In this document: positions 358 to 63,089 of the stretch, in pieces
Position numbering within the stretch: the stretch's first letter is position 1
Layout of the letters: every line of letters begins with the position of its first letter
NCBI GenBank assembly: GCA_002269645.1
Contig: NIVC01000899.1
Span: forward strand, 1-64,000
DNA length: 64,000 bases
Source: Macrostomum lignano
Taxonomy: Eukaryota
Reading direction: 5' to 3'
Program-made: the position numbers and the translations under genes
Notes under the pieces: model-generated
Database searches by the model: none
What the model was told of the DNA's origin: nothing
The model's input: only the letters and a program-made list of their open reading frames with translations

Positions 358-12074
<11,717 letters not shown>

Positions 12075-35560: not shown

Positions 35561-37556
35561 TCACACGCGACTTCCAGAGGCGGCGCCGGCAACAGCGGGC
35601 GCTTCAACCGTCACCATGACGGACAGCGAGGCAGCCGAATTGGCCAGCGCCTCGTTCGGACAGTTGGTGCCGAGATTCTTCGACCGTTGCATTCTACGGG
35701 AGCGCTCGCGAGCGAACAGGCTTTGCTGCAGCTGGTGCTGCGGCTGGTGCTGGCGCTGGGCCAGAAACAGAGACTGATGATGAGGCGCTCGCGATTCGCT
35801 CTTAGTCAAACTGTAGGCGAAGTTGGTGTGCCGGCGCTGTCTTAGCAGTTTGTACTTCTCCATTTCGATTGTGACGCACGGGCACCAGGCGAAGGCCCGC
35901 TTGAAACCGAGGCGAAAGCTGCAGAGAAACGATTCGAACTTATAACCAACCTAGTCATTTTTAATTGCTTCGTAGTTTTAGTGCCCCAGGCTGATAAGCC
36001 CTACATGTTTGGGTGATTGGCTTACTTGTGATTCATCTTGCAGTAGATAAACGGATTGGGCACAGTACTGCACACGGCTATGAAGTACAGAATGATGAAC
36101 TGCCAAGCCTCCTTCACAGTGAAGAACATCAACTGGTAGGGGATCCAGCAGAGTGCGAAGATCAGCACTACGATGATCATCATCTTTACAATCTGCGAGG
36201 CGAGGAATTCGATGGCTTTTTGTTTTATCGACAGCACCTTTAAAATTTCTAAATTCTAAAGTCAAGTGTCACTGCTTTTTTCACTCTTTAAAGTCTGTGC
36301 ATTTTGCATATTGATGGCAATTTTTATGCTTGTAAGTGTTCATTAACTTTGCCTAAATCACCTTTCTCTTGGCGCGGATATTCTCAGCCTGATGTGTTGA
36401 CACCTGCTCGCCAATTGGCTGCTGCTTCCATAGCCGGATAGCGATGACAATGTAGGTGAATCCGACCACAATCAGGGGCACCAGGCACTGCAGCGTCAGC
36501 AGAATCCAGTTGTACCTGGACGGTTTGATACGTATTCCTAATGTACTTATCTGTAGTTAACAAAACATTCAACAGATGTTTAAAATATGAGTAGAATCTT
36601 AATCTAAAATAGAATCCGCTCACGTCCTTGTCATGTTTTCCTCCATCTTGCAGGACACGGAGCCTGTCAGCTCGTCCACAATGTTGCTGTTCCAAGCCAC
36701 CGGAGCAGCTGTGAGGGTGCTGAATGCCCAGATGAAAACCAGGCTGGATATGATGGTGCCACGTCTTGGCCGGGGGCGCAGTGGATAGACGATTACCATG
36801 TACCTTGATAGTGATTAGAATGAGCGACTGCGTTAGCTTTTAGTACTGGGCTTAACGCAGGATGCTAAGAGTAGTAAGTCAATTCGTAGGAGGGCTTCGG
36901 TCGCATCAGCAAATCCAATGCGACAGTCGGCCCTCATCAGGCCTACCCGCTGACGTCTTGAGCACGCCCACGGATACGTACGCAAGCACACTCACAGGTG
37001 TACAACGCCACGGCCTTGACTTTCTCTTTGTCAGACATGTACGCTCGGTGACTCAGAGGTCACTCCGTCTTCGTAGACAAGAATCATACGAAAAGCCCTA
37101 AGGCCACTTTTTTAATACGACCCCCGAGTGCAGAATCGAACCCGGCTGAGCTGCTCTGCCCAGCTCCGCATTCAGAATGCTAAAATGAAATTCAATCCTC
37201 ACAGGTTTTATTGAAGCTTACCTCTCAATAGCGATAGCCATAAAGGTGAAAACAGACAGAGAAATGGAGAAGGTTGTGATAAAATTAGACAGTCGGCAGT
37301 AAAACAGGCCGAACTTCCACGAGCTGACGATCGCGTAGCAGACGTTCGGCACCACCTGCAGGGCGCAGAGCAGAATGTCCGACAGGCTCAGGTTGAGCAG
37401 GAAGATGTTCGTCACGCTGCGCATCTGGGCGTGCGCCAGGATTATCCAGACCACAACGCCGTTGCCAACGATTGATACGATCATCAGGGCTGAGAAAGCT
37501 GTCCAGATGGCCGCTTGGCTGGCATCGTTGAAAGTGACGTTTTTCTCTGATGGCAT
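35561..37556 (-). CDS. Class A neuropeptide GPCR, tachykinin-receptor-like, about 397 aa from ATG 37556
   Basis: Exons (minus) 37556-37222, 36803-36624, 36515-36362, 36192-36026, 35918-35561, phases consistent. [78 protein letters not shown]. Ligand not assignable. Confidence 0.88.
36900..37190 (-). mobile_element. Diverged SINE related to family A in GPCR intron
   Basis: Minus strand has B-box GGGTTCGATTC and the core GTTGTACACCTGTGAGTGTGCTTGCGTACGTATCCG shared with family A. Confidence 0.6.
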
Positions 37557-39020: not shown

Positions 39021-40587
39021 CGATTCCTTTGAGAAGATCGAATGCTTTAAATGACCTCATTATCCAGTTTTTTATCCTCAATAAAAACCAGTTCGATGCA
39101 AAGCATTCTTCTGAGGCGCCAACGAAATCTGAATTCATTGAATCGTCAGCGTGACGAACCCCCCCCCCCGAGATACACACGCGGTAAAAAATTTTATTGA
39201 AGTTTCCCCCGCTCCCCTTAATTTTAGCTTGGTCGAAGCGAAGCTTTTCATTTACTCGTAGTTCGACTTTTGACTCCATTTTTCACCGCGCGCTACCGAG
39301 CAGAGCTCAGCCATAAACTCTGGCAGCTTTTACCAACTTGAAAAGGCATTAAATTTGTCGTAAAGTTGAAACCGAAATATCGGATCCGCTCAGAGATTTC
39401 CTCCGGAAATGATCTCAGTAGAGAATATCCGAAAAAATAAAGATTCGCGAAGATCTCTCTTAGTCTCGGGTCACGATCAGTAGAGATGCTTCTGCAACAG
39501 AAAACTTTATGAAACGAAAAAGCCAAGAAGCAGTTCGATTCAATGTTGCTCAAAGGTCGATATGGTGTCAGAATTAATTTGAGCAGGAACCGAGTCTGAG
39601 CAGGCCTGAAACATTACCGGCATCCCGCCTGATTCATTAGACCAAATGGATGGGGCGGGAAGAAAAGGGAAGATGATGAATTCTGCTGTTTGTTTGAAGA
39701 GTTTCCCAAACCAAAGAGAATTGTTGAGGTCAGAATCCATTGAGAATTTCCTGTTCCCGAGGAGACGGCTGAACAAGCAACTGCTCATGCAACCCGGATC
39801 CCGTGCGCAGGTGATCCCATCTTCGAATTTAATCCCCACCTTGAGGCCACTGATTGATCCTTTGAGCTGCTAATGCACTCGCTATTGGAGTAGCCTTGAA
39901 GAGAAACAGGGGTCGTAGTATAAAGCTGTCGTAGCTTAAGTTCGATCGTACGTCGGAACTTTTACACGGCGGAGATAGGAGCTAAGAACGATCTTATCTT
40001 ACGATGGCTTTATAGAACGGGCCCACAGTCTTTTCTCGCAGCATCGAACGACAAGAGGTGAAATGCACCTCTTTGCTGTTTATTTGAGACATAGAAGAAT
40101 TCACAAACACTTCCATGTGAAATACGAGTAGTTCAATGAGTTTGAAGTGTGCTAGAGAATCCATGCAAAACATGTCTCCTGGTCTGGAGTATGGAGTAAA
40201 GTTTGGTGAAGTTCATTCAGTTCAAACTGTAAATTGAACTTAAACTTATATTTATAGACGGGGCAATGGCAAGTAATAAAAACGTGTAAATTGAAAATCT
40301 TTAGCAACTTGTACTTGTTAGTCCTAGTCCTAGCACTTGCTATGGCATTATCCGGTAGAGGACTGGTCGGAAACAAAATCTAAAAACTGAGATTCTCATG
40401 GATATCGTTGTCGCCATTTGCTCTGGTGTTCATGAGATTCTTGTTGATCCCCTTGCTAACAAGTGATGGTTGATGCTAACAAGTTGCAATGATCTTCACA
40501 ACCATGAGCATGCAAGTTTTATCAATTTTTCAGCAATATTCGATAGGCAGGGGTCACTCGGAAGTTTATTCACATTTGGCTGAGTCA

Positions 40588-43124
40588 TCACTCCACCAAT
40601 CCCCGGAGGAAGTCTTCGAACTCCATGGTCAGGCCCGTGCCGGAGTCGAATCTGCTGTTGCCGACGAACCGGAAGACACGGAAGGCGGCGCCGCTCTCGG
40701 CCGGGCAAAACTCGACGCGCCGGTTGCCGTTCAGCGCGCAGCGGAAAGTCTGCTTCAGGACCGAGTAGCTTCGCTTGTGACCGGAGGCGCCTGAGTTTGG
40801 TGAGCAGTAGGTTTGAGATATTATTCATTTATTGAGCTGCAGATTGTAATATTAAAGTGCTTACTATTATGGACATGGTCGTGCTTAAAAAACTGTATCA
40901 CATTAGGCTAAGGGCAGAGAAACTCAATGGCAAACGCATCTGACTCTCGCACCACGACCCCTGGTGGCCGCATTTATTTGAGCTTGAAAATTGACCAGGG
41001 GTTGTCGTGAGATTCACAGACATGAGAGCCAACCTTTTTTCTAAGTTAGACCTGTACACCCTGTGTGAGCGTGTATGAGTGCGGGCCTGTGTACAGCATT
41101 GGCGCGCTTGTATGTGCTCAGGAGCCAGCGCTGGTTGTGGGACGATGTCGCTGAAGGCGCTGCGCCAGAGTGCTCGCAGCCCTCCTGCAAACTCTTTCTG
41201 AAATCCTCTGTGAAAGAAATTCACTCTGTGACCTTTAATATGAATGCCGAAAAGTGAGATGCGAAACTCGCATTAGTTTAGCGACCGGTTTCTTAGTCGT
41301 TAATAATTGTTAGCCTGCATTAGTCACACTGAGCTGGAGGACTTGACCGTAGACACGGTTAAAGTGGCGTCGCTTTGCTTTCTCTTCTCGCTACTCGTTA
41401 GTAGGCGATGTCATAAAACTTTTGCAACAGCTGAAATTTCAAGTCACTCTATGCACTGGAATTTCCCTCACGGGCTCTCGTGTTGTTTAGACTGTTATAG
41501 TTCCGAAAGTACAGAAATCGGTGAAGATGCCACGGGTGCGTCACAACTTGACCTCAGAGATTTGAGATTTTTTTAATTCCAGGCTCTTCACAGGCGACGA
41601 AGGTTAGATCTCTAGGAAGGAAGGCTTTCAGCACGATTTGAGCTCCCATCAACCAGGTCAGTAAGTAACGGACAGGCTGATTCAATGAGAAAGAGCAGCT
41701 GGGTGTTAATAGTTCATGCCAAGCATAGAACCCGAGACAGTTACTACTTCCCAGGCTGAAACCAGGACGGGCCTTTGGGCTGTGCCCGCCCCTAGCCAGC
41801 AAAAGAGGAGCTCGCAATGGCGGCTTCTGCGATCTTCGAGGAGTTCACTCTCGAAGAATCGCTCAGGGTTTGATTCCACGCGAGATTTCATTGATTTAAG
41901 GTTTGTTCGTGTATGCAACTTAACATGGGGCTTTTCGTGTCGTTCGATTGATCCCACTGAAACCCGACCCCCAAGACACTGACCCTGTAAATTACGATTG
42001 GGCGATGAGGCCAGAGATGCTGTAGCCTGCTGTGAGTTCTGGCTATGGGAACTGTCACCTTACTCAGTACCCTAGGAAACTAAACCTGATTGCTAGTAAA
42101 ACTGTTGCTAGTAAAAAAGCGGATGCAAATTCTCTGATGATTGTTTCTACCTGCCTGTCGGCATGGGGTGAGATAAGAGCCTAAGAACAGATAACTAATA
42201 TAAATTCTTTTTGAGTTTAGTGTAACAAATTCAGCACCAATCGATTTCAGTACCAATGGGAAGATGTTCCCTAATTCAAGAACCGCCCAAAGTTACCGTT
42301 GCCGCCATGACTTTCGCGTTCTATGGAAGCATATTAGGAGGCTCAACTTCGCTTAAAAGGTGTTAGCAAAAAAAATTATAGAAAAATAGTAGATCGACCC
42401 ATTTAGTCAAACACACATCAGGTTTTTATGCATATTGAAAGTCTTGAAGGGGTATTGACAATTTATTAGTAGAAAAACAGAAGCATTTTCAAGCCTTCCA
42501 ATATTTTTCCATCGAACGCGAGTGTTACGTCCAGATAAACGGTAGCTTTTAGTGGTCCTTGTTCCCGTGTTAGGGGGTTGTAGCCTAGTGGTCAGAGCGT
42601 CGGACTTGCGACTTGAAGGTCGGGGGTTCGATTCCCGATCCCACTGGAACAATTTGTGTCCTTGAGCAAGACACTTAATTCTGCATTGCTTCAGTTCACC
42701 CAGCTGTTAAATGGGTGCCAGCATTAGCTGGGGTAATTAAGGGTCTGTGTGGCGACCCACCCCCCCCCCCAGTCCTTGGACTGAACAGCCGTACGCAGCC
42801 TTCAGATGTGCCGCGCAATAGCTGCGGCTGAGCTGTCGGTTGCACATGTGGCCATTAGGGCAGGTGTAATCAGTTATTATTGTTTATTATTATTCCCGAG
42901 TTAAACCCGCTAAACGGCCAGTCAGACTCACAAGCGCCTCTGTACCGAGCCCAGGCAGCAAAGATGCTCTGACGGGCGGCCTCTTCGCTGTTGAAGGCCT
43001 TCAACTTGCCGTGCGGCCAGTCGACTCGGAACTGGCCCTCCTGCTGGTTGAACCATCGCAGATCGGCGAAATCGCCGCTGTGCAGCCGGTCCAGCAGCCA
43101 GGCGTCGATCGGGTCTTTTGGCAT
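40588..43124 (-). CDS. IRF: Interferon regulatory factor IRF-B, about 131 aa, DNA-binding domain only
   Basis: Exons 43124-42932 (MPKDPIDAWLLDRLHSGDFADLRWFNQQEGQFRVDWPHG..IFAAWARYRG) and 40790-40588 (SYSVLKQTFRCALNGNRRVEFCPAESGAAFRVFRF...GLVE*); phase 1 intron consistent; Trp repeat, WxH and K..FRCALN recognition helix of the IRF fold. An in-frame ATG at 43181 is an alternative start. Confidence 0.85.
40910..41190 (+). mobile_element. Diverged SINE related to family A in IRF-B intron
   Basis: Core CTGTACACCCTGTGTGAGCGTGTATGAGTGCGGGCCTGTGTACAGCATTGGCGCGCTTGTATGTGCTCAGG from 41051; weak tRNA-like head upstream. Confidence 0.6.
42573..42892 (+). mobile_element. tRNA-derived SINE family B with CORE-like central domain
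   Basis: tRNA-like head with A box (TAGCCTAGTGG) and B box (GGTTCGATTCC); central GTGTCCTTGAGCAAGACACTTAA..CAGTT..CAGCTGTTAAATGGG; (TTA)n-like tail; 11-bp TSD TTCCCGTGTTA (42562-42572) / TTCCCGAGTTA (42893-42903). Confidence 0.88.
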
Positions 43125-44369
43125 ATCGGCGTGCGAGTTAAGGCTGAATCTAATAGGAGACTCCGGGAGCAATGAAGACATCAATTATAATATATTGAGC
43201 TAGGCTTGCAAATCCCCCGTTAGTCCATGGCGTTTCCTTGTAAAATGAGACAGACGGACAGAAGAGAAGACAGTATATAAATATTCTATCGTTTGTGCGT
43301 ACTTTGGCATTGCTGCCAAGACATCATGGGGCTATTTTTAGGCTATCCACAGCTATTTGCAGAATTAACTGTCGCTTTGAATTTATACACCTCCTCTTGT
43401 GCACACCTGGCGAGACAAAAAATGCACCTCTGCTCTTCTGGAATTTCCAGGTTGAAGAAATTCATAATCATCATCACGCTAAATTTAGACTCGAATGTCA
43501 CGAAATTAGAAATACATATTCGGCACAAAATCACGGAGTCTAACGACCGAAAGACATTTTCAATCGTATGTCGAGAAAACGTCATAGTAGAGCCGATACA
43601 GTCGTAGTCCTTGCCATCAGCTCCTGCGCCGCAGGAGTTTCTCGTCACTAGCGTCATTGGCCGGTACATCTTTTTTATTTACAATTCAACAGGGATTCAC
43701 AGACTAAATCACCCTTAAATGAGTGCCCGGGCGCGTGGTAATCAAAGGGCGCCACTGGATCCTCCGTTGGGCCGTAGATCAAGACCCAACATCTCTCAAT
43801 CTGGGCGAAATTTTCTACCGGCAGGCAGTCCAAAGGCGCTGTCCCTCAACCCTCTAATCAGCTCCGGAAGCTTCTAATAAGCCTTTCGCAAAGAGACATC
43901 CCGGCTGCTATCATGGCTCTCTCCGGTCACGGCTGATTTTCCAGGCACCAGTACTTTCAGGGAAATACCACTAATGCAAACTGTAGTTTTTGCAACTCAG
44001 CTCAAACAGTGTAAGACATTTCGCAGATAATCCCAAGAAGCGGCACCTAAAGTTCACATCTACAAAATTAGTTCCAGTAAGACTGCAGGAAGGTAGGTAT
44101 ATCCCTACATTACATAGCCCTTGGCAATCCTTTCCTTTTCTTCATCTTTGGTGCACACGCACTCTTCAAAGGGCTAAAGAGTTCACTCCAACAAAGAAGC
44201 CTCATGATCATTTTGCGCTGAAAGAAAATACCACCTAAGTGACTGAGTATACGATCGTATATTTTAAGCGGAATAATTTTACAAAATTATATTTGTTTAA
44301 AGTAGTAGTTATTCGTTTGAAAAATATTTATTATATCATAAATATTATAAATTATTATATCTAATATCA

Positions 44370-45670
44370 TCTTACCGGAGATGGTGTGGAAAAGGCATCT
44401 TATCGAAGATAGTGTAGAAAAGGCATCTTATCAGAGATGGTGTAGAAAAGGCATCTTATCAGAGATGGTGTGGAAAAGGCATCTTATCAGAGATGGTGTG
44501 GAAAAGGCATCTTATCGGAGATGGTGTAGAAAGGCATCTTATCAGAGATGGTGTGGAAAAGGCATCTTATCAGAGTTGGTGTGGAAAAGGCATCTTATCG
44601 GAGATAGTGTAGAAAGGCATCTTATCGGAGATGGTGTAGAAAGGCATCTTATCGGAGATGGTGTGGAAAAGGCTTCTTATCAGAGATGGTGTGGAAAAGG
44701 CATCTTATCAGAGATGGTGCGGAAAAGGCATCTTATCGGAGATAGTGTAGAAAGGCATCTTATCGGAGATGGTGTAGAAAGGCATCTTATCGGAGATGGT
44801 GTGGAAAAGGCATCTTATCGGAGATGGTGTGGAAAAGGCATCTTATCGGAGATAGTGTAGAAAGGCATCTTATCGGAGATGGTGTGGAAAAGGCATCTTA
44901 TCAGAGTTGGTGTGGAAAAGGCATCTTATCGGAGATAGTGTAGAAAGGCATCTTATCGGAGATGGTGTAGAAAGGCATCTTATCGGAGATGGTGTGGAAA
45001 AGGCTTCTTATCAGAGATGGTGTGGAAAAGGCATCTTATCAGAGATGGTGCGGAAAAGGCATCTTATCGGAGATAGTGTAGAAAGGCATCTTATCGGAGA
45101 TGGTGTAGAAAGGCATCTTATCGGAGATGGTGTGGAAAAGGCATCTTATCGGAGATGGTGTGGAAAAGGCATCTTATCGGAGATAGTGTAGAAAGGCATC
45201 TTATCGGAGATGGTGTGGAAAAGGCATCTTATCAGAGATGGTGTGGAAAAGGCATCTTATCGGAGATGGTGTGGAAAAGGCATCTTATCGGAGATAGTGT
45301 AGAAAGGCATCTTATCGGAGATGGTGTAGAAAGGCATCTTATCGGAGATGGTGTAGAAAGGCATCTTATCGAAGATGGTGTAGAAAGGCATCTTATCGGA
45401 GATGGTGTGGAAAAGGCATCTTATCGGAGATGGTTTGGAAAAAGCATCTTATCGGAGATGGTGTGGAAAGGCATCTTATCGGAGATGGTGTGGAAAAGGC
45501 ATCTTATCGGAGATGGTGTGGAAAAGGCATCTTATCAGAGATGGTGTGGAAAAGGCATCTTATCGGAGATGGTGTGGAAAAGGCATCTTATCGGAGATGG
45601 TTTGGAAAAAGCATCTTATCGGAGATGGTGTGGAAAAGGCATCTTATCGGAGATGGTGTGGAAAAAGCAT
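44370..45670. repeat. 27/28-bp minisatellite (GGCATCTTATCGGAGATGGTGTGGAAAA) with 331-bp higher-order duplication, between the two IRF genes
   Basis: About 1.3 kb of tandem units; variant CAGAGTTGG at 44571 and 44902. Confidence 0.95.
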
Positions 45671-45960
45671 CATAGTTTTCAAATTGGCCCTTCCTAAAGT
45701 TCGGAAGAGAAGAAAAATGTGAAACCATCCACATGTTGACGTTTTCGGTCAAAATAATATTTTCTCTCCTGATATCTTGAAATTTAGCTGAAAGAATTGA
45801 CTTGCTTTCAAACAAAGCAATTTCATTACAGAATATGGCAGATTCAAAGAAAAAATAACATGTTTCAAGTGTCAAAACGAGTCTAATTCTCATACCGGGG
45901 TAGTTTCCAGTTATGTAGGCTAAAAAATTCTGGAAAAGCGAATGCAGACGTCACCGATTC

Positions 45961-47164
45961 TTATTTCGAGTTTCTCTGCTCAAGAATGTCGGACAGGAGA
46001 TCATTCGCCACAACAGGTTCGGTTTGCTGCAACGGCTCCAGCCAGTCCTTGCAGCTGGACACAATGTCATTGTACTCGGGGCCGCTCAGCAACGATTCCG
46101 GACAGTTGCTGTCCAACTGCGGGTCGTCCGGATTGCCTGTTGCAGACGCCTGGTCCAGGGCGCTGGTGCTGAGCGCGACGTCGTCTCTGCCTGAAGAGTC
46201 TCCTCTGGCGCTGAAGGAGGGTGCGGTGCTCAAGTCGGGAGCGCTCGAGTGCACGGGAGCTCGCAGGCGGTAGACTCGGCAGGCCGAACTGCCCGAGTGG
46301 AGCTGCGAGCAGGCAAGTAGTCAATGCTTTTGTTGCCAGTCAGGGCGCATCTGAGTTTCTGCTTCAGCACCGTGTAGTCTGTAGTTGATTCGCCTTAGGT
46401 TTTTTAAAAGAAGTTCAAGAATTAAGAATTTTTAAACTAAATATTAGTTATACGATGTGGACAAGTATCTAGCGATTAGATTTTTTATCACAGAATTTCA
46501 CTATCAATTTTGAGTTCAATTTCTAAATGCTATCATTGGTAGTGACATAGTTCGTAAAATAGGGTTTATTTTGTTTAACCTGCCTGCAAATGAACTAGTC
46601 TGTAGTATTGTGCTTAATCCATTTGTGGCTTGGGTTGTGTTCGGGGTCGAAAGGAGTGAAACCAAATCGCAAATATTAATTTTTTTAAAGTGAGATTCCC
46701 AGAACGAGATTATCATGTGAGATATTAAGTATCTAATGGTACGAGTAATCACGGGCTATCTTTTCCTGAGATACTCTTTCTTAGGGTGAAGATCTTAAGG
46801 CGATGCTTGCATTCTCAGGTCGAGGTTCTTAGGGCGAAGTTCTCAGGGCGAGATTCTAAAGGGCGAGGCTTTGATTCTACTACGTGTCTAAAGAAGACCT
46901 ATTAAAATTTTGGAGAAGAGCGAGAACATGCCCTCCGTCATACTTACCCCTGTGCCGCGCGTACGCCAGGAAGACATTATTCTCCCTGCGCGCCAAATCC
47001 CAGTGCGCCGCCGACATGTGCGGCCAGTCAATCCGGAAGACGCCCTCCGACTCGTCGACCCAGCGCAGGTCGGCGAGGTCGCCCATGTGCAGGTGCTGCT
47101 GAATCCACCTGTCGATGGTGCAGCCGGACTTCTCAGTTGCTGCTGTTGTTTTTGCTGAGTCCAT
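45961..47164 (-). CDS. IRF: Interferon regulatory factor IRF-A, about 216 aa (DBD plus Ser-rich/acidic tail), one frameshift
   Basis: Exons 47164-46948 (IDRWIQQHLHMGDLADLRWVDESEGVFRIDWPHMSAAHW..FLAYARHRG) and 46393-45961 (YTVLKQKLRCALTGNKSIDYLPA..CRVYRL..); same intron position and phase as IRF-B; one base missing around 46280-46310. Confidence 0.82.
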
Positions 47165-49214
47165 CGACCGCGAAGTTTAAGCCTGACTCTTCAGCGCTTA
47201 GCGACAGGGAAGCTGGGGTTCGGTACCTGAGGAGATGCCATTCTTCCAATGCGTTCTTAAAGTAGCCTTCCCCGGCCCTCCGATCCCGAAATTCCGAGGC
47301 AAAGCCGGGTGAATTTCCTTCTGTTTGCGGCAGACTGTAATAATACCAATAAAGCCTTTCTAACTTGATCCAAAGCTTCAGTTTTCGCTATAAAATTTGG
47401 CCTCGGAATTCCCGGATTTTCCAAGGCAACGCTCGCTTCAGTCCCGTACTTGACCTAGTGCGTACATTGGCCAGTTGAGCGTACAGTCAGCCCCTCCCCT
47501 TTCTGTCCACCCCTGTGCCTATGTACATTCTGTTCCAGTTAGTGTACGCGCTTATTTTAAACTTCTTAGAAAGTATGGTTTAGATTAAAATACCACTGAA
47601 TTCCGGCCTGTAATGAGTGGCCGAGAGAGAATATTTGGGCAAGTTTAAAGCAACTAAAGTAATTATCAGTAGTTATCTGCTCAAATGCAAAACTTTTAAT
47701 TCAACAGTTAAAGTAAACAAGTAACAAGTGTACTTTGCAAGCAGATTATGCCCTTTAATGAAAAGTTGTAGGTATTGTTAATGGCAGGAGCCAGTGTTTC
47801 GCGTTTGATTCTAAATACCTGTTGATCTGTACAAGATTAATGAGGATGAGAAAATCAAAATGGTCAGAAACTCATGATCAAAGAGCATCAGATCGAAGAC
47901 GGCTTTCTGTAGGTAATTACCAACTAAAAAAGTAAGCCTGCTCATATCCTAAACTACTCAGTAAATCAGTAGTACAGTAGTATATTCGTTAAAAACATTA
48001 AAAAATGTATTCAAAAGCGCATTTCAAGTTTCTCAGCTATGAAATGTTCTGACAGGCCCAGGTCACGAACTCTCTCTCTCTCTCGTAATTTTCCCAGTTC
48101 TGTCAAAAGCGTGCGTCATTCAGCTGGGATCCGCTGAGTTCGACTGGAGCATAGTGAGATAATGCCCGATCTAGACTGGCTGAATGCTCAGCAGCAGTCA
48201 ATTTGTTTCCTGCCGGCACTGCTAAGCTAGTGCGAACTCGCGCTCCGCATGGCAACACTGCTTCAAAGCGAATAGCGAGACTTAATAATCACCAGCGCCG
48301 GTCTCTCCGCTTTCAATTTCATCTCTCATCCCCCCCCCCAACCGACTCACAGCGCTCCGGGCCGCTTCATCACTGCCCGAGTTCGTATTGCAGTCAGTCA
48401 CGCGACACAGTTCGAGGGCTGGTCCAGTTTTTCACTCAATTAATCATTTTAATACACCTTTCCTTGCCGCTCCTCGGCCCCATTCTCTTTGGTGCGCATG
48501 GCTGGCCGCCTCCCGCGCCCGGCTTGAGCTGCCTAATTAACTACGGGGGCTCGCTTGATTGAAGAATTTTGGGCCGGGAAGCGGTGCAACTCCCGTGTGG
48601 CTGACTGACGGGCTGGAGCTACAGGACTGCATAGAATTGGATTCCTGTTGAACAGGTATGAGACAGGTGTGTGTGTGCGCGCTCTCTGTTGCTGTTGCTG
48701 CATCTGCTTGCTGAGGACTGTCGGTTGTCGCCCCGTGTCATCACCCAGCGTTTGCATTTAATTTACCCCCCATGCATGGGCTGAGGTCAAAAAAGACCTT
48801 TTTTATACGTGTACAGCTTTCCTTCCCAAAATCCAGGTACGCTCGTACAGTGTATATACGATTGTTTCATTTCGTCCGGGTAGTGGAAGGGACTGCAGGT
48901 ATAATTCAATTTGGTAAGATTGGGCGCAGTCAAGCGTGGAATTGTGAGAGCTGCATCTGCGAGCAAGTCAGCCTGGATACCCTGGATGAGACTGTCTAAT
49001 GTTAGACTATTTTTGGAACGAATAATTGTCAAGCATGCGAAAACCCGTACTGGTGTTTTGTGCCATTGTGTCTAGATTTTATGCTTGAGCTTAGCCAGAC
49101 TCAGCGGCTCGACAGGGATTAAAAGAGTGAGCATTGTCTTCAATGGCTGTCAGATCTGGGAGAACATATTTCAATTGCTGAGTCCTGCGACCTGAGTCAT
49201 TAATACGGCCTAGG

Positions 49215-49460: not shown

Positions 49461-51756
49461 CAGGGCGGATTGTACCCTTAGCTGTGGATCAGTCCTGAGT
49501 CCTGTATCATCGATCCCCAGTCCCGAACCAGTAACTCTAATTCCTCCTTAATCGGGTCCTCTAATCCGAAACCATTAGTCTCGTCCTGAATACTTAGTTG
49601 TGGATTCTGAACCCTGATTTCTGGTCCCCTGAAGCCTGATAATCAGGCCCTGATTCTGAGTTGTGAAACCTGAAATTTAGATACGATCTGACTTCCATTT
49701 TTAGTATATTGGATCTGACTCCCAAACACGCACAATGCACCACAGATCAAATTACAAAACTGTACAACTCATAGCTTTTTCTAAACTAAATCATTCATAA
49801 CAATTGAGTCCTATGTATGCTGTAACTACTCCAAAGAGCTAAATATTCTAAAAAATCACAGTAAACCCAGGAGTCTGCGTCAACCTACATGTACTATGAA
49901 ATGAAAATCAGCCAGCCTAACTATTCTCAAACATCATGACGTCCTTTGAAATTCAAAAAAACCTAATAGTCGTAAGAAATGACATGAAGTTCGTATTGTT
50001 AAAAAGAAGGCGTCTTGAGCTTTGCAGGTGTTATTTTGCTGCTTTTCCTGTCAATCTATCGATGCGGAATACAAGAAAGCGGAATTCGTAGAAGATTAAA
50101 AATGAAATAAAAAACTAATATTATAATTCTCGTATATCTAGTTATCGTCAGGATAAAAAAGGGCTGGCTGCATAGATACGATAGTAAGCCCTTGAATATT
50201 CCCCAATGCCTCAAGCTGTTCGACGCGCGTCTCTACTTCTCTAATCGCCTCGTACTTGGGCGCTTCTCCAGTTAGTGGGAAAAATAATTAATTACTTAGA
50301 GAGAGAAAAATCAGCTGCTAATCAGACTCGCATCTCCCTCCCGAGGCACAGCTGTCAGGCGTTGCGGCTCACTCTCAGCGGTTGTTGCTCACGTGACCCC
50401 TCCGTCCCTCCGTGGATAGAAGGCTTGAGAATAAATTAAAGCGATATCTGGAGTCCCAAGCCTTCAGTGCTGAGGCTATACGAACCCTCGTGTCCCAATG
50501 CTGAGCACAGTTGATCTCAGCCGAGAATTTCTACTTATCCCACAATTTCATATCGCAGAATCTGCCGGCAATATTGTCTAATCCGCTGCGTGAGAACAGC
50601 TCAGTGCGACAGCAATCAAAGCAGTGGACCAAAGCGGAGCTATTAGTTCCTTAGTTGCGTGTCTCTGCGAGTTGAGGCTTGCAGGAAAATCCTCCCCCAC
50701 CTTCACCCATTTCTGCAACACGGAGCCCAAAAAGGCCTTTCCAGCAGACAGAGAGAGTTAAATTACAGATGAGCTGCGGGTCTTTGGACCGTTGGACGCG
50801 TGGATATTGAGCCGGCGAGTTGTCACGCAGCGCTCTGAAAAAGGGCGGATTTGAGCCGGTATCCGATCCCTACTCTGTGCTAGCCTCTCATTGATTTTCT
50901 TGGCCTCTCCTACTCGCTTCCACTCTCCCCTCCTCTGTCTTGTGTTTTTCAGCAGCTCTTCTACCCAGAACCCGGCGCTTTATTTGGATAATGAGAAAAC
51001 CGGGGGTCAGATCAAACTGGATTTCAGATTTCAGGGCCTCCCCGAGGTCCTTCCGCGGTCTTAAAAGCTTTCCTACTCTGCTTTGCCAGTATCGCGCATA
51101 GGGCTGGTCGGACCAGCGTGAGAAAAGCGAGGGCCTGGGCTGTCCTTCCTCCCATACAGCCAAGACAGGCGGAAAAGCCGTGTGAGAACCGCCATGGTCC
51201 GGTCCAGATGCGCTAATTAGCAATGAGCTGATATTGCTGGCTGCTACCTCAGCCCCGCCCGAGGGCGGCATTGGCCAACTCTCACTCACTCATGGAGTGC
51301 GTCAGATTGACAAGCCGGGTCCCGAATCCATTGCCATTCTGTCCCCAACCCCTTGCTGTCAGTCTCTCCTACTCTGCTGAGAAATTTCTCCCTATTCTCT
51401 TCTCGGCGATTCTCAGGTTGCCTGAGTTTCATTTGTATCTCCTCTGAGGCATCTACTTTTCCTATTTATTCCAGGACAGTGGGCCGGGATCGCCCACCCT
51501 ACCCCCGGGGCGGCCAATGGCAGCGGAGTTGGCGAGGACACGGGAATCGCGGCAGCGGCCATGGTGATATGGCGTATAAAAAAGCCTCAAACGGGAATGC
51601 ACTTGTCGCTGCAGATCTCCCCTCCAATTATCCCAGAATCCTTCCGCCGCATCTCCGTTTGTTGCTCCCCTGACGGCGCCGGAACTCCTGAAAGCAGATA
51701 TTTTGATAATAAGTTCACCTGGTTTCTAAGACACCGCCCTCCCGAACAGATCCGAC

Positions 51757-54700
51757 ATGGACCCCGATGGCAAGGAGGCCGAGGACGCCGTCGCCGAAGC
51801 GAAGGTGCCTCTGCGAGACGGCGAGGAAGCTACAGCGGAAGCAGCCAAGGTCGCTGGATTATTAAACACAGATGCTTCTGCACATATTCTGAACTAACTG
51901 CGAGCTTTCTTTATTCGCTCTTTCAGGCGTCAGGGCCGGTCACTGTTAGAGAGAAATGGAGCAGCAAGTTGGACTTCATTCTGAGCTGCATTGGACTCTG
52001 CATCGGATTGGGCAACGTGTGGCGCTTTCCCTACCTCTGCTATGAGAATGGCGGCGGTGAGCTTTTAGGGAGGGGTCTCAATGCCTAAGCACTTTTTGGG
52101 ATGCTGAGACAATAGAGAAAGAGCTGAGGCAGTAGAACTACTGTGCGTAGAACATCGGAGGAATTCGAATTTGACTTTGAATGCGAGCGGAGGGTCTCAT
52201 GGAGGTCAGGATAGGGCTGATCAGATGCGCCCCTCCTCTATGAGGATCTGGGAGTCCACGGTCTTTTACAATAGTCAGCACACAGTCTACTCTTTAAAAA
52301 CTGCAAATGTAGTCTTATTTGGTTTTTTAGTTAAAAAGTTAAAAATTTTGCGGTAATAAGGGTCAGTGATCCACCGGATACCTTTGACATTTGCCATAAG
52401 CAGTTTACACTTGCGAATGCCTATTTTTATTCTTCCAAACCATCTTCGGCCAAACCAGGCACCTTTCTGATCCCCTATCTGATCACGCTCTTCTTCGGCG
52501 GAATCCCCATGCTGATGCTGGAGCTGAGCCTCGGCCAGATGCTGAACGTTGGTGGCCTCGGAGTGTGGAAGTACTGCCCAATCTTCAAGGGTAAGAAAAA
52601 CCATCGGCAGGCCGCGGTGCGACCGTCGTTAAACATTGTTTTATTTGGCTGTCTGCTCTGCGCTCGCAGGCACAATCAGCCATGCAATCTTCCCCTGGCA
52701 ATGTTTGCTTACACACCACCGGTCTCTGCGGGGTCGGGGCGCCGGTCCAACTGAGATGAGGAATCTGTCATCTTCGCTTTCCTCCGCCTGCTAGCTTCTG
52801 GATGGGACAACTCGTGGAATGGGAAGGCAGGCATCCCGTCTGAGCCACAGTGGAAGCGACAGCTGGGTTGCAACAGAGCGATAGAGACGAGATGAAGGGA
52901 GCCTTGAGAGATTGTCTTTTTTCAGAAAAAGCCATTCGGCTTAATTAATTGTCTCTGACAGAGTGGAATGGCTTTCAAATTTCTCGTCTCCGACAGGAAA
53001 CACAATTGCGACAACTGCCGAAGAGGGTCAGGAGAGTTTTGCTTTTTCAATTTAATTTTTGCAGCCCCAGTCAGCCTCGGTTCCTTGAATCCTAGATTTC
53101 TATCCGATTTGGCAATAACAAAATTCATGACTTGCTGCCTGCGAATGCTTGCAAGGCCCCACTGTCGGTCCGTCCAGACGGAATCGACGCAAGCTAAAGG
53201 TCAATTCATGTAATCGGGCCTTTTCACGCAGCGCTCTTTGAACTTTGATTTCAGGTGTCGGCTTCTGCGCCAATATAATGGCTTTCTGGCTCAACGTGTA
53301 TTATATTGTCATTGTGGCCTACGCGCTTTATTATCTTGGCAACAGTTTCACCATGGGCGAATTGCCCTGGAAGAAGTGCAACGAAAGCTGGAATACGCAC
53401 TGCTGCATGTCCACTTTCGCCAACAATACGGGCTTCAACTGCACCATGGTCAACATCTCCTACTCCGCCACGAATTTCACCCGCGGTCTGCTGCCGACCA
53501 CCCTGATCCCATCCGGCTACAATGACAGCTGGGGCCCAATCTCCGTGATTGGGACAACCAGCGAGATGGAGCAGTGCCAGCTGTGCGGCAAGGACAGCTG
53601 GAACTCGCCGGTGGCCGAATTTTGGGAGTGAGTTGCTTTTTCAATCTGTTTTGTACTCGTATGATGCCTGTGCACTGTGGGCTACTCAGGCGGATGGAGG
53701 CATGGGCCCATGCCTGAACGGGTCCAGAAGTATTGAGCCATTTTATTAATTTCAACCTCTCCAGACGCCAAGCGCTGAGCATGTCCACCGACATTGGAGA
53801 GGCCGGAGGGCTGCGCTGGCAGCTGGTGCTGACGCTGGGCATCGCTTGGATCGTCTGCTACTTCTGCATCTTCAAGGGCGTTCAGTGGACCGGAAAGGTT
53901 GTTAATTTGGTTGAGCTTGCTAGTTGTGTGAGCGCTTTGCTGCGGGAAAAAAGGAAAATAGTTGAATGCTTTTCTGGAAGATATACTGGTTAATAGCTTT
54001 AGGATTGAGAATTTGAAATTCCTAATAATGACTTGGGCTGTGTAATCTTGTGGAACTCACGTCCAACAGCTGTCAGAATCCGCTTGGAACTGATTGCAGA
54101 TAGTGTACGTCACAGCTCTGTTCCCGTACATGCTGCTCATCATCCTGCTGTTCCGGGGCATCACACTGGACGGAGCGAGCATTGGCATCGAGTACTACCT
54201 GAAGCCGAACTTTACCAAAATTCAGGAGTCAAAGGTGGTCTTTAATTTTTAACCAATAATAATTCCAGCAATGTTAAATTTTAAGTCAGTTATGTCAACA
54301 ACAGTTAATCAAATCGAATGAAGCTGAACTTGAGTTTGCATTCCCACTCGCAGGTGTGGCTCCAGGCCGCCTCTCAGATATTCTTTTCCCTGGGCCTAGG
54401 CCTCGGCACGCACATAGCTCTTGGCAGTTACAACCCGCTAACCAACAACTGCTACAAGTGAGTGCCTGGCAATGCTCCGTTTTTCGTTGCATGCACCCAG
54501 GGTCTACCCTATTTGCTTATTCCGTCAATGCTTTTTATCAACTGCAACCACAAACTGTCTTCCGCAAAGGGATGATGAGTTGGCTCATTTGTCTCTGTGT
54601 CTCTCGTTCTCCTTTTTTGTATTTTTTTTCCATCAGGTGCTTTACACATGTAGCTTCAGGGTATAGTGTCAGGTAATCGCGTATTCTCTTTGAATATAGC

Positions 54701-59818: not shown

Positions 59819-60444
59819 GGAAAACTTGCCACCGATTCAGACAGATGTTTTCAGCTTTCACTATGTTGGAAAAAGCTTACAAGTTGACCGGAAAAAAAGC
59901 AATTGTTTTTCTTCGGAAAAAATACACGAGGTAACGCAATGCGAGCACATACTACTTAAGCCAACCCCAATAGGCCCTGGACACGCAAACAGACCGTGTT
60001 GGGGCCACGAGTTTCCAGGTCTCTCAGTGCGCATGGCCCGATCAGTCCGTTTTTCCCTGCCCTACCCGACAATGCCTGGCTCTATTATTTGGTGCTCTTT
60101 CTGTTTCTTGATAAACAATCAAGCTTGGCTGGAAGGCCCTCAAAACCAACTAAGAACTGGCTGTGTTGCCGTGTATCTTGGAGCTATTTTTGGCGAACAC
60201 GATCTCGTGAGAGAGATGCTGAGCGGAGAGAAAACGGAGTGAGGGCTGTTTGGGGTCATTCGGAGAGAATCTTAAGCACATGACTGTCTTCTTTCTCTCC
60301 TCTGTCTCAGCTGCTCAGCTGCTTTTCTCAACCATAATAGTGACCGATTGCGTAAAGAGTAGACAGTACCTGCAGGAGCAGAGAGGGCCCGAATGTTCTG
60401 TTTTGGACTTTTTAGCAGTAAAAAAACTGGAAAGACTGTCAGAG

Positions 60445-62341
60445 ATGTCAGAGAGAAGCGTCAGTCTCGAGCTGCTTGCGGTTGATGGACGGCGGTTTCG
60501 CTGCCGGCCCGACCCAAGGCACTTCGCTCCAGTTCAAGGCCGGTTCGGGCGCATCTTCAGAGTGCGCATCAGCGCAGCCGAGACTAGCGAAAGCACCGCA
60601 GACGAGACGGCGGCAGTTTACTGCGCGGACAAGGCCGGCAGGAAGCTGCTTAGCTGCTTCAGCATCCTAGCGCAGTTGAAGCACGATAACATTGTGCGCC
60701 TCATCGCAGCTGCCAGGGACGCTGACAGCGCCGCCTCGGTGTGCGTCCTCATGGAGTGGGTGGGCGCTGGCAGTCTACGCGACCTCATTGACCGAAGCGG
60801 CTGTCTGACAGAACCCTTGATTGGAGCGTACGCAAAACAGGTTTGTTTTATTCGTACATAGTCATTTAATTTAACTAATTTACATTGTTACATAACAATT
60901 AAAAACAAATTGACTTCGCAAACTGCAACATGGTCTCACTATCGGATGAGCTCTTGTCAATATCTGCTTTCTCTCTGTAAACTCTGATCCCGAAAAGGCA
61001 TTGTAAAAATTTACTTCAATGCGCAGATCGGATCGGCCTTGAATTACCTGCACAGCCGCAGCATTCTGCACCGCAATGTGAAATGCCGGTCCGCACTGAT
61101 CACGGAATCTGGCCATACTAAACTGGCCGGCTTCACCGCCTGCTGCCTCCTTGAAGAGGACGACCCTGACGCGTCGCTAGATGTCCGTCAGTTTGGCTGC
61201 TTTCTGGTCGAGATGGCTACCGGTAGGACCGGCTGCAAGGAGGCACCGGAATCTTCGACGAACCAGCTGCGCAGTCTGTGCGAAGCGTGCGCAGAGCAGC
61301 AGCGGCCTCGCATGGAGCAGCTGTTGCAGCTCGAATTTTTCCAGTGAGTCCTCGCTATTGCCTGAGTCTGGTAATAAAAGCTTAGAAATATCAGAATTGA
61401 GAGTGGCGTTTAGAATGGAAAACATGGAAAGCAAGGTCTTGGTTGAAAAAATACAGAAAAATGTTTTAACCAATGTTCGACAATGTCAAGTCGATTCTAT
61501 TCTAAGAAAGTATGAGCTATGAGCTATAAATATGAGCTAGAAAGTATGAGCTATAAATTAGATTGTCTAAAAAAGAACAAACACATAGACATGAACAAAT
61601 GGATTTCCTCTTCTAAAAAATTACTGAACAATCATTTCCTGTTAAAGTAATGCCATAATAATGCTTGTTTCCGCCGCTGTTGTAACAAACAGAACGATGC
61701 AGTCGCTTAAGCCTCTGCTGTCGCCGTCGCCTCCGACGCCGACGCAAGCCCTCAGACCGGTGAAATCTGATCGCTGCCTCCTGGGCGGCCGAGCTGAAGT
61801 AGGTGCCAGCGCACCCGAGGTCCTCCTGCCACAGCGCCGGCTTGGAGAGAGCGACGCCACCGAGGAGCTGGACGATGATGACGAGGCCGGAGCCCGCGGT
61901 CTGGACAAGTACCGGCAGACAGACGACGAGGATGAGGATTATTTCGAGCTGGAAGGGACGGATTTTGAAGAATTAATCGAAGAGGACGAAAATGAACAAG
62001 ATGAGGAGGATGCGCAGGCCTGTCAAATTGATCGAGAACGCCTGCTGGGCCGCGGCCGGTTCGGCTCTGTATTCCGCGCTGACCTGCACGGAATGCCGGC
62101 CGCTGCGTACAGAACAACGCCCGGATGTCCAGAGGAGACGCTAAAACAGTTTCGGGCAAGCTGTCTTATTCTTGGCAAACTGAGGCACGACTGCATTGTT
62201 CGACTCGTGAAAGTGCTGAGCGACAGCTCCGGCTGTCTGACAGTCCTCACGGAGCTAGTTGAAGGCCGCAATCTGCGCTCCATTCTGACTCAGCGAAAGG
62301 CCGGATTTAGAGAAGGCGACCTCCGATCCTACTGCCGACAG
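60445..62341 (+). CDS. STE11/MAP3K-derived pseudokinase gene, probably two kinase-like domains in tandem; 3'-partial
   Basis: Exons 60445-60840, 61027-61343 (or to stop 61347) and 61693-62341. Domain 1: GRFGRIF, LKHDNIVRL, LMEWVGAGSL, YLHSRSILHRNVKC, KLAGF, DVRQFGCFLVEMATG. Domain 2: LLGRGRFGSVF, LRHDCIVRL, LTELVEGRNL, YCRQ then donor GTATCA. Both domains have a phase-0 intron at the equivalent position. Rest of domain 2 not found in the window. Confidence 0.8.
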
Positions 62342-63089
62342 GTATCAACCATATACTAAAAATGGTCTGTCGGTAGGTAGGTATGTAGGTATGTGTGTGA
62401 TCGGTTTTAGCAAAAATGGCTCAACCGATTTTCTTCGAACTTGCACTGTTCGATCAGAAATTTTTCCGTGACGGTACCAAGGACTACTTAACAACTCCTT
62501 GTTAAGTACTGTAGTCCTTGGACGGTACATGCATCGTAACTAAGAAATTTCTCGATGCTAAAAGGATTAAATATTCGAAAAACATGCTTTTTTGCAAAGG
62601 TCAAGCAGCTCTTTCGACTTGAAATGCATTGTAAGAATGCTAGAGAAAAAAACTGACTGGTTGAATTCTGATTCTGAAATGGATTGCATCACAATTGGCT
62701 TTTTATTTATCGTCTGTGTAGTGGCTGAATTTTGAGACTGAATTGAACTGCGTCACAGTATTGAAAATGCAGTGTGGAAGCATAGCACAATTCTTGATTT
62801 ATATTGCGTAACCATATTGCTAACTTTAATACTGGTACTGACTTGCCTAAGAAATTGATTATGTCATTACTGCTTCGTGTGACTGAGTGTTGAATTATAA
62901 GTGCTACAAATAGATATACTAATTAATTTATAAATTCGATGAGAGCTAACCTAGATGTGACCACACTGGACGGCTAATGCAGCGACCTGAGTTCGAATCT
63001 TAGTAGTGTAAAAATAAAAGTAGCATATTTTTTTTATTTAAAGCTTTTATTAAAGGGCTAATTAAAAAGACCTGGATTATGGCGCTTGA

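Follow-up and report, generated by a model that had tools for sequence, protein, structure and literature searches.

Two putative IRF1-like transcription factor genes in tandem in the flatworm Macrostomum lignano

Two IRF genes and their place in the family

The 64,000-nucleotide stretch of DNA analyzed here (contig NIVC01000899.1, referred to below as the window) comes from Macrostomum lignano, a free-living flatworm, and the locus of interest matches the UniProt entry A0A1I8JFR9 of this species, in agreement with a preliminary description that had called the genome flatworm-like. The same description had recognized two IRF genes on one strand, and this also holds: the window carries two minus-strand genes, designated IRF-A and IRF-B, each composed of two coding exons and each encoding a protein that passes the Pfam profile of the IRF DNA-binding domain (DBD), PF00605. 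Taken as a whole, the sequence evidence makes it quite probable that IRF-A and IRF-B belong to the IRF1 supergroup (IRF1/IRF2/IRF11-like), as short transcription factors of divergent sequence. The features of the locus are listed in Table 1.

Table 1. Features of the IRF-A/IRF-B locus, with the limpet intron used for comparison; positions are those of the window unless another sequence is named, and a slash marks an exon boundary.
Feature	Position	Strand	Remarks
IRF-A gene	43124-40588	minus	two coding exons; product of 131 aa
IRF-A coding exon 1	42932..43124	minus	193 nt; ATG 43124-43122; 64 codons + 1 nt; donor T/GTGAGT, phase 1
IRF-A intron	40791..42931	minus	2141 nt, phase 1
IRF-A coding exon 2	40588..40790	minus	helix LKQTFRCALNGN, wing, 25-aa tail, TGA 40590-40588
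AATAAA polyadenylation-type hexamer	40565..40570	minus	17 nt past the IRF-A stop codon, read directly
Conserved leader motif AGATTCAGCCTTAA	43138..43151	minus	just 5' of the IRF-A ATG; CAG is the acceptor in the UniProt model
IRF-B gene	47164-45961	minus	two coding exons; 216 aa in the intact reading
IRF-B coding exon 1	46948..47164	minus	217 nt; ATG 47164-47162; 72 codons + 1 nt; N-terminal half of the DBD
IRF-B exon 1 donor	ends 46948	minus	G/GTAAGT, phase 1, in the Gly codon after ...AYARHR
IRF-B intron	46394..46947	minus	554 nt
IRF-B coding exon 2	45961..46393	minus	recognition helix LKQKLRCALTGN, wing, then tail; TAA 45963-45961 in the +1 frame
GGG homopolymer, IRF-B frame break	46292..46294	minus	read as GGGG (SSTRGSSACRVYRL) in the UniProt model
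Premature TGA of the unshifted IRF-B frame	46230..46232	minus
Conserved leader motif AGAGTCAGGCTTAA	47177..47190	minus	just 5' of the IRF-B ATG
A0A1I8JFR9, chimeric model as a whole	25900-47200	minus	fuses four separate window genes and a filler open reading frame (ORF)
Filler ORF inside A0A1I8JFR9	43343-43669	minus	without homology
Rhodopsin-type G-protein-coupled receptor (GPCR) exon inside A0A1I8JFR9	37218-37556	minus
GAF-domain cyclic-nucleotide phosphodiesterase exons inside A0A1I8JFR9	between 25928 and 33512	minus
Patella caerulea IRF1/2-like gene, first DBD intron	JAZGQO010000015.1 (L001), 515-782		phase 1, in the Gly codon after WAMHT

The Pfam search that had been proposed in the preliminary description was run with the PF00605 cut-off of 27 bits, and gave 68.4 bits for IRF-A (E 7.8e-19, profile positions 3-104 of 105) and 58.4 bits for IRF-B (E 1e-15, positions 2-104), the latter with its reading frame bridged at a break discussed below; read literally, IRF-B scored 55.1 bits over positions 2-95. 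By these profile matches, IRF-A and IRF-B are genuine members of the IRF family, encoded by tandem paralogous genes. Degenerate searches of the 64-kb window for the LKQxxRCALxGN helix motif and for the DLRW....EG strand motif found exactly two sites each (0.02 and 0.12, respectively, being expected by chance) and, since both searches returned the same two sites, the window contains two IRF copies and no third. IRF-A consists of the DBD followed by a tail of 25 residues, with almost no C-terminal region, and IRF-B, in its intact reading, of the DBD and a Ser/Asp/Glu-rich tail of about 100 residues. The Pfam search found no IAD1 (IRF-3) domain (PF10401) in either protein at E <= 1, and no other domain at this level except a sub-threshold Ets match, and searches against PDB sequences matched IRF DBDs alone until E ~1e-4.

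The evidence on the fold comes from a predicted model of IRF-A, built by AlphaFold2 from an alignment of 25 sequences (mean predicted local distance difference test score, pLDDT, 80.2; predicted template-modelling score, pTM, 0.71). In this model, the DBD has helices at residues 6-16, 47-51, 54-61 and 73-86 and four strands (a winged helix-turn-helix), in the order expected for most of the IRF fold. A Foldseek comparison with the PDB returned IRF or vIRF DBDs for all of the top 50 matches, among which cellular IRF DBD chains had target-normalized template-modelling (TM) scores of 0.57-0.84. A short amphipathic helix in the tail (MEFEDFLRGLVE, residues 121-130) is weakly predicted, with low confidence.

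A third M. lignano paralogue is represented in UniProt by A0A1I8JBS5 (P0012), A0A1I8I1F2 (P0157) and A0A1I8GTL5 (P0158), under the automatic name 'IRF tryptophan pentad repeat domain-containing protein'. The placement of the window genes in the IRF1 group follows score ranking only: when the M. lignano paralogues were combined into a profile, the single-DBD chains of the PDB scored 61.5 bits for IRF1, 60.8 for IRF11 and 60.4 for IRF2, with IRF4 (52.9 bits) and also IRF10, IRF3 and IRF7 ranking below them. IRF-B alone matched IRF1 at 49.9 bits versus 35.7 for IRF4, and IRF-A alone ranked IRF4 first, slightly. The best named database matches of the paralogue profile were IRF1/IRF2/IRF11-like proteins from fish and molluscs, at 25-34 % identity.

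The preliminary description had presented the lack of an IAD or SMAD/FHA domain as a peculiarity. The lack is confirmed for IAD1, but it is normal for the IRF1/IRF2/IRF11 group: IRF1 and IRF2 have no IAD1 (PMC6543449), and the absence of a SMAD/FHA-type domain is, thus, to be expected in IRF-A and IRF-B. The C-terminal IAD1 by which the IRF4 supergroup is defined is missing from the window genes, IRF-A ending 25 residues past its DBD, with the AATAAA hexamer downstream. IRF-A also leaves no room for an IAD2-type region, and the IRF-B tail had no detectable similarity to anything searched, a search that included no IAD2 profile.

In a profile search run exhaustively over 1.84 billion representative proteins, A0A1I8JFR9 was the single overwhelming match (E 7e-170, 578 bits, versus 88 bits for the runner-up), and the only close relatives of IRF-A and IRF-B to appear were M. 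lignano proteins. Because of this restriction and of the gap in score, the small M. lignano IRF family looks lineage-specific in sequence. A word-index homologue search with IRF-A as the query returned no matches, and no paper on M. lignano IRFs was found in the literature.

The two introns had initially been described as sharing one phase-1 position within the DBD. Both are indeed in phase 1, but the alignment places them 6 nt (2 codons) from each other, the IRF-B intron interrupting the Gly codon after HR and the IRF-A intron the Cys codon of YRGA/C. In an IRF1/2-like gene of the limpet Patella caerulea (P0166), the Gly codon that is split in IRF-B is likewise interrupted by a phase-1 intron, even with the same G/GC division (WAMHTG/KF). 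Because this intron is found exactly at the IRF-B position, the intron is older than the flatworm-mollusc split; judged by its phase and position, it is the ancestral IRF intron and is, therefore, uninformative about a recent duplication of IRF-A and IRF-B. The lineage-specific duplication previously suggested retains the backing of the tandem paralogy, at 44 % protein identity, and of close relatives confined to M. lignano, but the shared intron says nothing about how recent it was.

Tryptophan pentad, DNA contacts and predicted function

The preliminary description had assigned complementary changes in the tryptophan repeat to the two proteins, with Tyr replacing the fifth Trp in IRF-A and the fourth in IRF-B. 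This pattern disappears once the proteins are aligned with IRF4 and with the chain of the IRF1 structure: both have Leu (VLKQ) where the fifth pentad Trp would stand, and the nearby Tyr (Y-S/T-V-L-K-Q) lies three residues upstream of the Trp5 position and is not its equivalent. IRF-A keeps Trp 1-4 of the pentad (4/5) and IRF-B keeps Trp 1-3, with Tyr at the fourth position (FLAYA; 3/5) and the extra 'HxW' Trp of the IRF1/2 type; neither protein has all five of the Trp residues by which the IRF family is recognized.

In IRF1, DNA is contacted by Arg82, Cys83, Asn86, Ser87, Trp11, Trp38 and Trp58, the last of these being a DNA-backbone contact (PMC6543449). The equivalents of the DNA-side residues W11, W38 and W58 are W, W and W in IRF-A and W, W and Y in IRF-B, and those of Arg82, Cys83, Asn86 and Ser87 are R, C, N and G in IRF-A and R, C, T and G in IRF-B. 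Across the three M. lignano paralogues, the equivalents of Arg82, Cys83, Trp11 and Trp38 are invariant, Trp5 is Leu in all three and two of them have Tyr in place of Trp4; at the Asn86 equivalent, IRF-A has N, IRF-B has T and the third paralogue has R, and the Ser87 equivalent, G in both window genes, is S in the third. The LKQxxRCALxGN helix, singled out earlier as unusual, is so in part: L in place of W, the Q, and G in place of S are all unusual, but 'RCAL' is invariant in an alignment of 25 IRF1/2-like sequences. Several of the supposedly unusual features of these genes had been misread (the Trp pattern) or are ancestral (the intron, the lack of IAD1 and RCAL).

The residues retained suggest that IRF-A and IRF-B would bind sites with a GAAA core, similar to the IRF element (IRF-E) or the interferon-stimulated response element (ISRE), with the helix-3 Arg-Cys pair and the three retained DNA-side Trp/Tyr residues as the predicted GAAA contacts. 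By analogy with IRF1, IRF-B and the third paralogue may activate transcription via their acidic tails, and the minimal IRF-A might either activate transcription weakly or compete for the same sites. The presence of N, T or R at the position of IRF1 Asn86 would confer somewhat different site preferences on the paralogues, possibly at flanking bases. The altered DNA specificity previously suggested for IRF-A and IRF-B would be a plausible possibility, and a role in an interferon-independent defence program is plausible by analogy only. A more elaborate scenario, in which a Macrostomum clade of at least three IAD-less IRFs lost Trp5, varied at Asn86 and came to recognize distinct motifs, with IRF-A as a genome-encoded, DBD-only competitor tuning interferon-independent stress or defence responses in a regenerating flatworm, must be considered doubtful.

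Several observations weigh against the interpretation of these proteins as GAAA-binding factors of the IRF1 type. The losses of Trp5 and of the Ser87 equivalent (Gly) in both proteins, together with Thr at the Asn86 equivalent in IRF-B, mean that GAAA binding may be weakened or changed. The proposal of activation tails is based on composition only, the tails of IRF-B and of the third paralogue being alike in composition and having no significant sequence similarity (E 2.1). ISRE-like sites (GAAANNGAAA) are not enriched in the window (9 found versus 4.8 expected, a count of 9 being reached in 6 of 100 shuffles) and neither are kappaB consensus sites (5 versus 4.8 expected). Finally, the frame of IRF-B is literally shifted in the window, and this copy of the gene could be a pseudogene.

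The substitutions could also be read as a sign that classical IRF function has been abandoned, the proteins recognizing a motif other than GAAA or acting in development rather than defence. Such a shift would account for Leu at Trp5 in three paralogues and Tyr at Trp4 in two, for the exchange of N, T and R at the Asn86 equivalent and for the Gly of IRF-A and IRF-B, versus the Ser of the third paralogue, at the Ser87 equivalent; it would also be in keeping with the finding that RNA interference (RNAi) of an IRF3/4-like gene in planarians was without effect on the TBK1-dependent response (PMC13563047). It is possible but unlikely, given that the equivalents of Arg82, Cys83, Trp11 and Trp38 have not changed in any of the three paralogues and that the part of PDB chain 2o61_A that comes from IRF7 has Arg at the Asn86 position as well. 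The reading retained here is that of IRF1-supergroup factors, with GAAA-core sites as their predicted targets.

Gene models, the IRF-B frame break and the surroundings

Read literally, IRF-B goes out of frame after ...LPARSST, continuing past NKSIDYLPARSST as RAVRPAESTACELPCTRALPT up to the premature TGA, a break that the preliminary description had not mentioned. In the +1 frame, which runs open over about 117 codons as far as 45961, the conserved final strand RVYRL (GSSACRVYRLRAPV) is encoded, and a single G added to the GGG homopolymer gives LPARSSTRGSSACRVYRL, restoring GSSAxRVYR. This four-G reading is exactly that in the UniProt model of the same locus, and the resulting wing aligns with KGSSAVRVYRM of the IRF1 structure chain and with SRGCDAYRVYRL of the M. 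lignano paralogue. Because the UniProt model, the IRF1 chain and the paralogue all agree with it, GGGG is identified by this comparison as the ancestral coding state of IRF-B. The three-G state in the window is most likely a homopolymer error of the assembly, the other possibility being one real null allele or copy; in the species, the gene probably does not have this frame break. A micro-intron bridging the two frames was dismissed for want of a GT donor and because the stretch to be excised aligns with coding sequence of IRF-A.

Alternatively, the IRF-B of this window might be a recently inactivated pseudogene, null allele or homeologue, the functional genes being IRF-A and perhaps another copy of IRF-B. 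The window does have GGG at this position, the RVYRL strand, which is conserved, is absent from the literal frame, which runs into a stop codon, and M. lignano has many near-identical duplicated regions. Inactivation nevertheless seems improbable, given that IRF-B carries just one lesion, downstream of which a long +1 frame remains open and GSSAxRVYR is still encoded, in agreement with the IRF1 structure chain, that the reading is intact in an independent model of this locus, and that the lesion lies inside a homopolymer, a classic place for long-read assembly errors. In the intact gene favoured here, exon 2 may start as given in Table 1 or, equally possibly, at a second in-frame acceptor lying 15 nt downstream (exon 2 start 46378), which is used by the UniProt model.

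That model, A0A1I8JFR9 (P0007), is a protein of 1530 aa named 'Phosphodiesterase', composed of pieces from the minus strand of the window: IRF-B, the filler ORF, IRF-A, a rhodopsin-type GPCR and a GAF-phosphodiesterase. It is a chimeric ab initio gene model in which neither IRF is annotated as an IRF. The possibility that the two DBDs are exons of one larger multi-DBD gene is highly improbable: the model does join them, proteins with 2-5 IRF DBDs exist (in the annelid Owenia fusiformis and the spider Uloborus, for example) and the reading frame is open for 20 codons ahead of the IRF-A ATG, but the model swallows the GPCR and the GAF-phosphodiesterase too, as is typical of ab initio fusions, and needs both weak donors (CCT/GTTGTG and TTG/GTGGAG) to bypass the two stop codons and a filler ORF without homology, whereas IRF-A starts at an ATG of its own, in a leader homologous with the IRF-B leader, and has an AATAAA just past its stop codon. 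The single-gene model was, thus, rejected as an ab initio fusion.

With IRF-A and IRF-B treated as two separate genes, the leaders 5' of their ATGs show conservation (AGAnTCAGsCTTAA) despite a protein identity of just 44 %, and the leader CAG is a possible splice or trans-splice acceptor. The IRF-A gene would end at the AATAAA hexamer. Its intron contains, on the plus strand, a tRNA-like element (42574-42643; 34.9 bits with the Rfam tRNA model and no call by ARAGORN), which is probably the head of a tRNA-derived short interspersed nuclear element or a pseudo-tRNA, and, after this element, a poly-C run at about 42759-42771.

Between the two IRF genes, starting about 290 nt downstream of the IRF-B stop codon, lies a minisatellite (44368-45671) in which a 28-bp unit, CATCTTATCGGAGATGGTGTGGAAAAGG, is present in about 47 copies, with 92 % matches and higher-order periods of 221 and 331 bp; there are 27 tandem-repeat rows in the whole window. 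An inverted repeat is located 120-250 nt upstream of the IRF-B ATG (47283-47303 and 47397-47417; 21 nt, 86 % complementary, 93-nt spacer). Its arms contain GGAATT(T)CC, a motif found nowhere else in the window, and it may represent either a regulatory palindrome or the termini of a small transposon. On the plus strand, ORF translations alone pointed to exons of other genes at 4886-5362, 51561-53631 and 60250-62359; these ORFs comprise a catalytic-domain exon of a classical protein kinase C, an SLC6-type neurotransmitter transporter and two protein-kinase-like ORFs.

Significance and comparison with known IRFs

M. lignano is a genetically tractable flatworm, in which RNAi and transgenesis are available. 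A planarian study published in 2026 reported no clear IRF3 or NF-kB effector downstream of TBK1 (PMC13563047), and the separated IRF1-like models provide concrete candidates for the innate-immune wiring of flatworms downstream of this kinase. Separating the two IRF genes from the 'Phosphodiesterase' model also corrects an annotation error. The genes add divergent members to a well-known family and architectural class and do not constitute a new kind of system; the remaining interest lies in the loss of Trp5 across the Macrostomum paralogues, in the variable base-contact residue, in the existence of a 131-aa DBD-only member and in a mis-annotated locus with one copy frame-broken in the assembly.

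IRFs have been known in flatworms since 2007, when SmIRF from Schistosoma mansoni was published, a protein of 476 aa that is closest to IRF4 (PMC2194728). It was cloned from a set of genes without members in sequenced nematodes or insects, and IRF C-termini were described in the same paper as generally having a SMAD/FHA domain (PMC2194728). A diverged planarian IRF3/4 homologue, the RNAi of which left the TBK1-dependent response unchanged, was listed in 2026 (PMC13563047). Like these two genes, IRF-A and IRF-B are flatworm IRF genes with an N-terminal Trp-rich DBD; SmIRF, however, is IRF4-like, whereas the window genes have no SMAD/FHA domain and match IRF1/2. Since they lack IAD1 and match IRF1/2, the window genes would not be one-to-one orthologues of SmIRF, from which they are set apart by its published description.

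The closest resemblance is to IRF1, IRF2 and IRF11 and to the IRF1/2-like proteins of molluscs, with which the window genes have in common their best sequence matches, the IRF fold and the lack of IAD1. IRF-B has further points of likeness, in the succession of a DBD and an acidic or Ser-rich tail and the extra 'HxW' Trp of IRF1/2-like proteins, in the GSSAxRVYR wing of the IRF1 structure chain, and in the phase-1 intron of the Patella IRF1/2-like gene, situated in the Gly codon after W4-x-H-x. The window genes differ from IRF1/2/11 in their low identity (only 25-34 %), in the replacement of Trp5 by Leu and of the Ser87 equivalent by Gly, in the Tyr at Trp4 and the Thr at the Asn86 equivalent of IRF-B, in the length of IRF-A (just 131 aa) and in having no detectable similarity to IAD2, with the limit already given for that search.

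The third M. lignano paralogue resembles the window genes in its LKQNFRCALRGS segment, in its L-K-Q-x-F-R-C-A-L-x-G helix and in the Leu at Trp5; it also has VFLAY, with Tyr at Trp4 as in IRF-B, an SxxRGxxAxRVYRL wing and an acidic tail. It lies outside the window and is only 31-34 % identical to IRF-A, and it is distinguished by about 20 extra residues inserted ahead of helix 3, by the Arg at the Asn86 position and by a tail that cannot be aligned with that of IRF-B. Database proteins with 2-5 IRF DBDs in a single chain were encountered in Owenia fusiformis (P0008), Uloborus diversus (P0009) and Acipenser ruthenus (P0011); they may be genuine multi-DBD IRFs or else models in which tandem genes like those of the window have been fused. 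Natural truncated IRF isoforms consisting of the DBD only compete for ISRE sites. IRF-A is similar to these isoforms in being little more than a DBD, but it is encoded by a gene of its own rather than being produced as a splice isoform.

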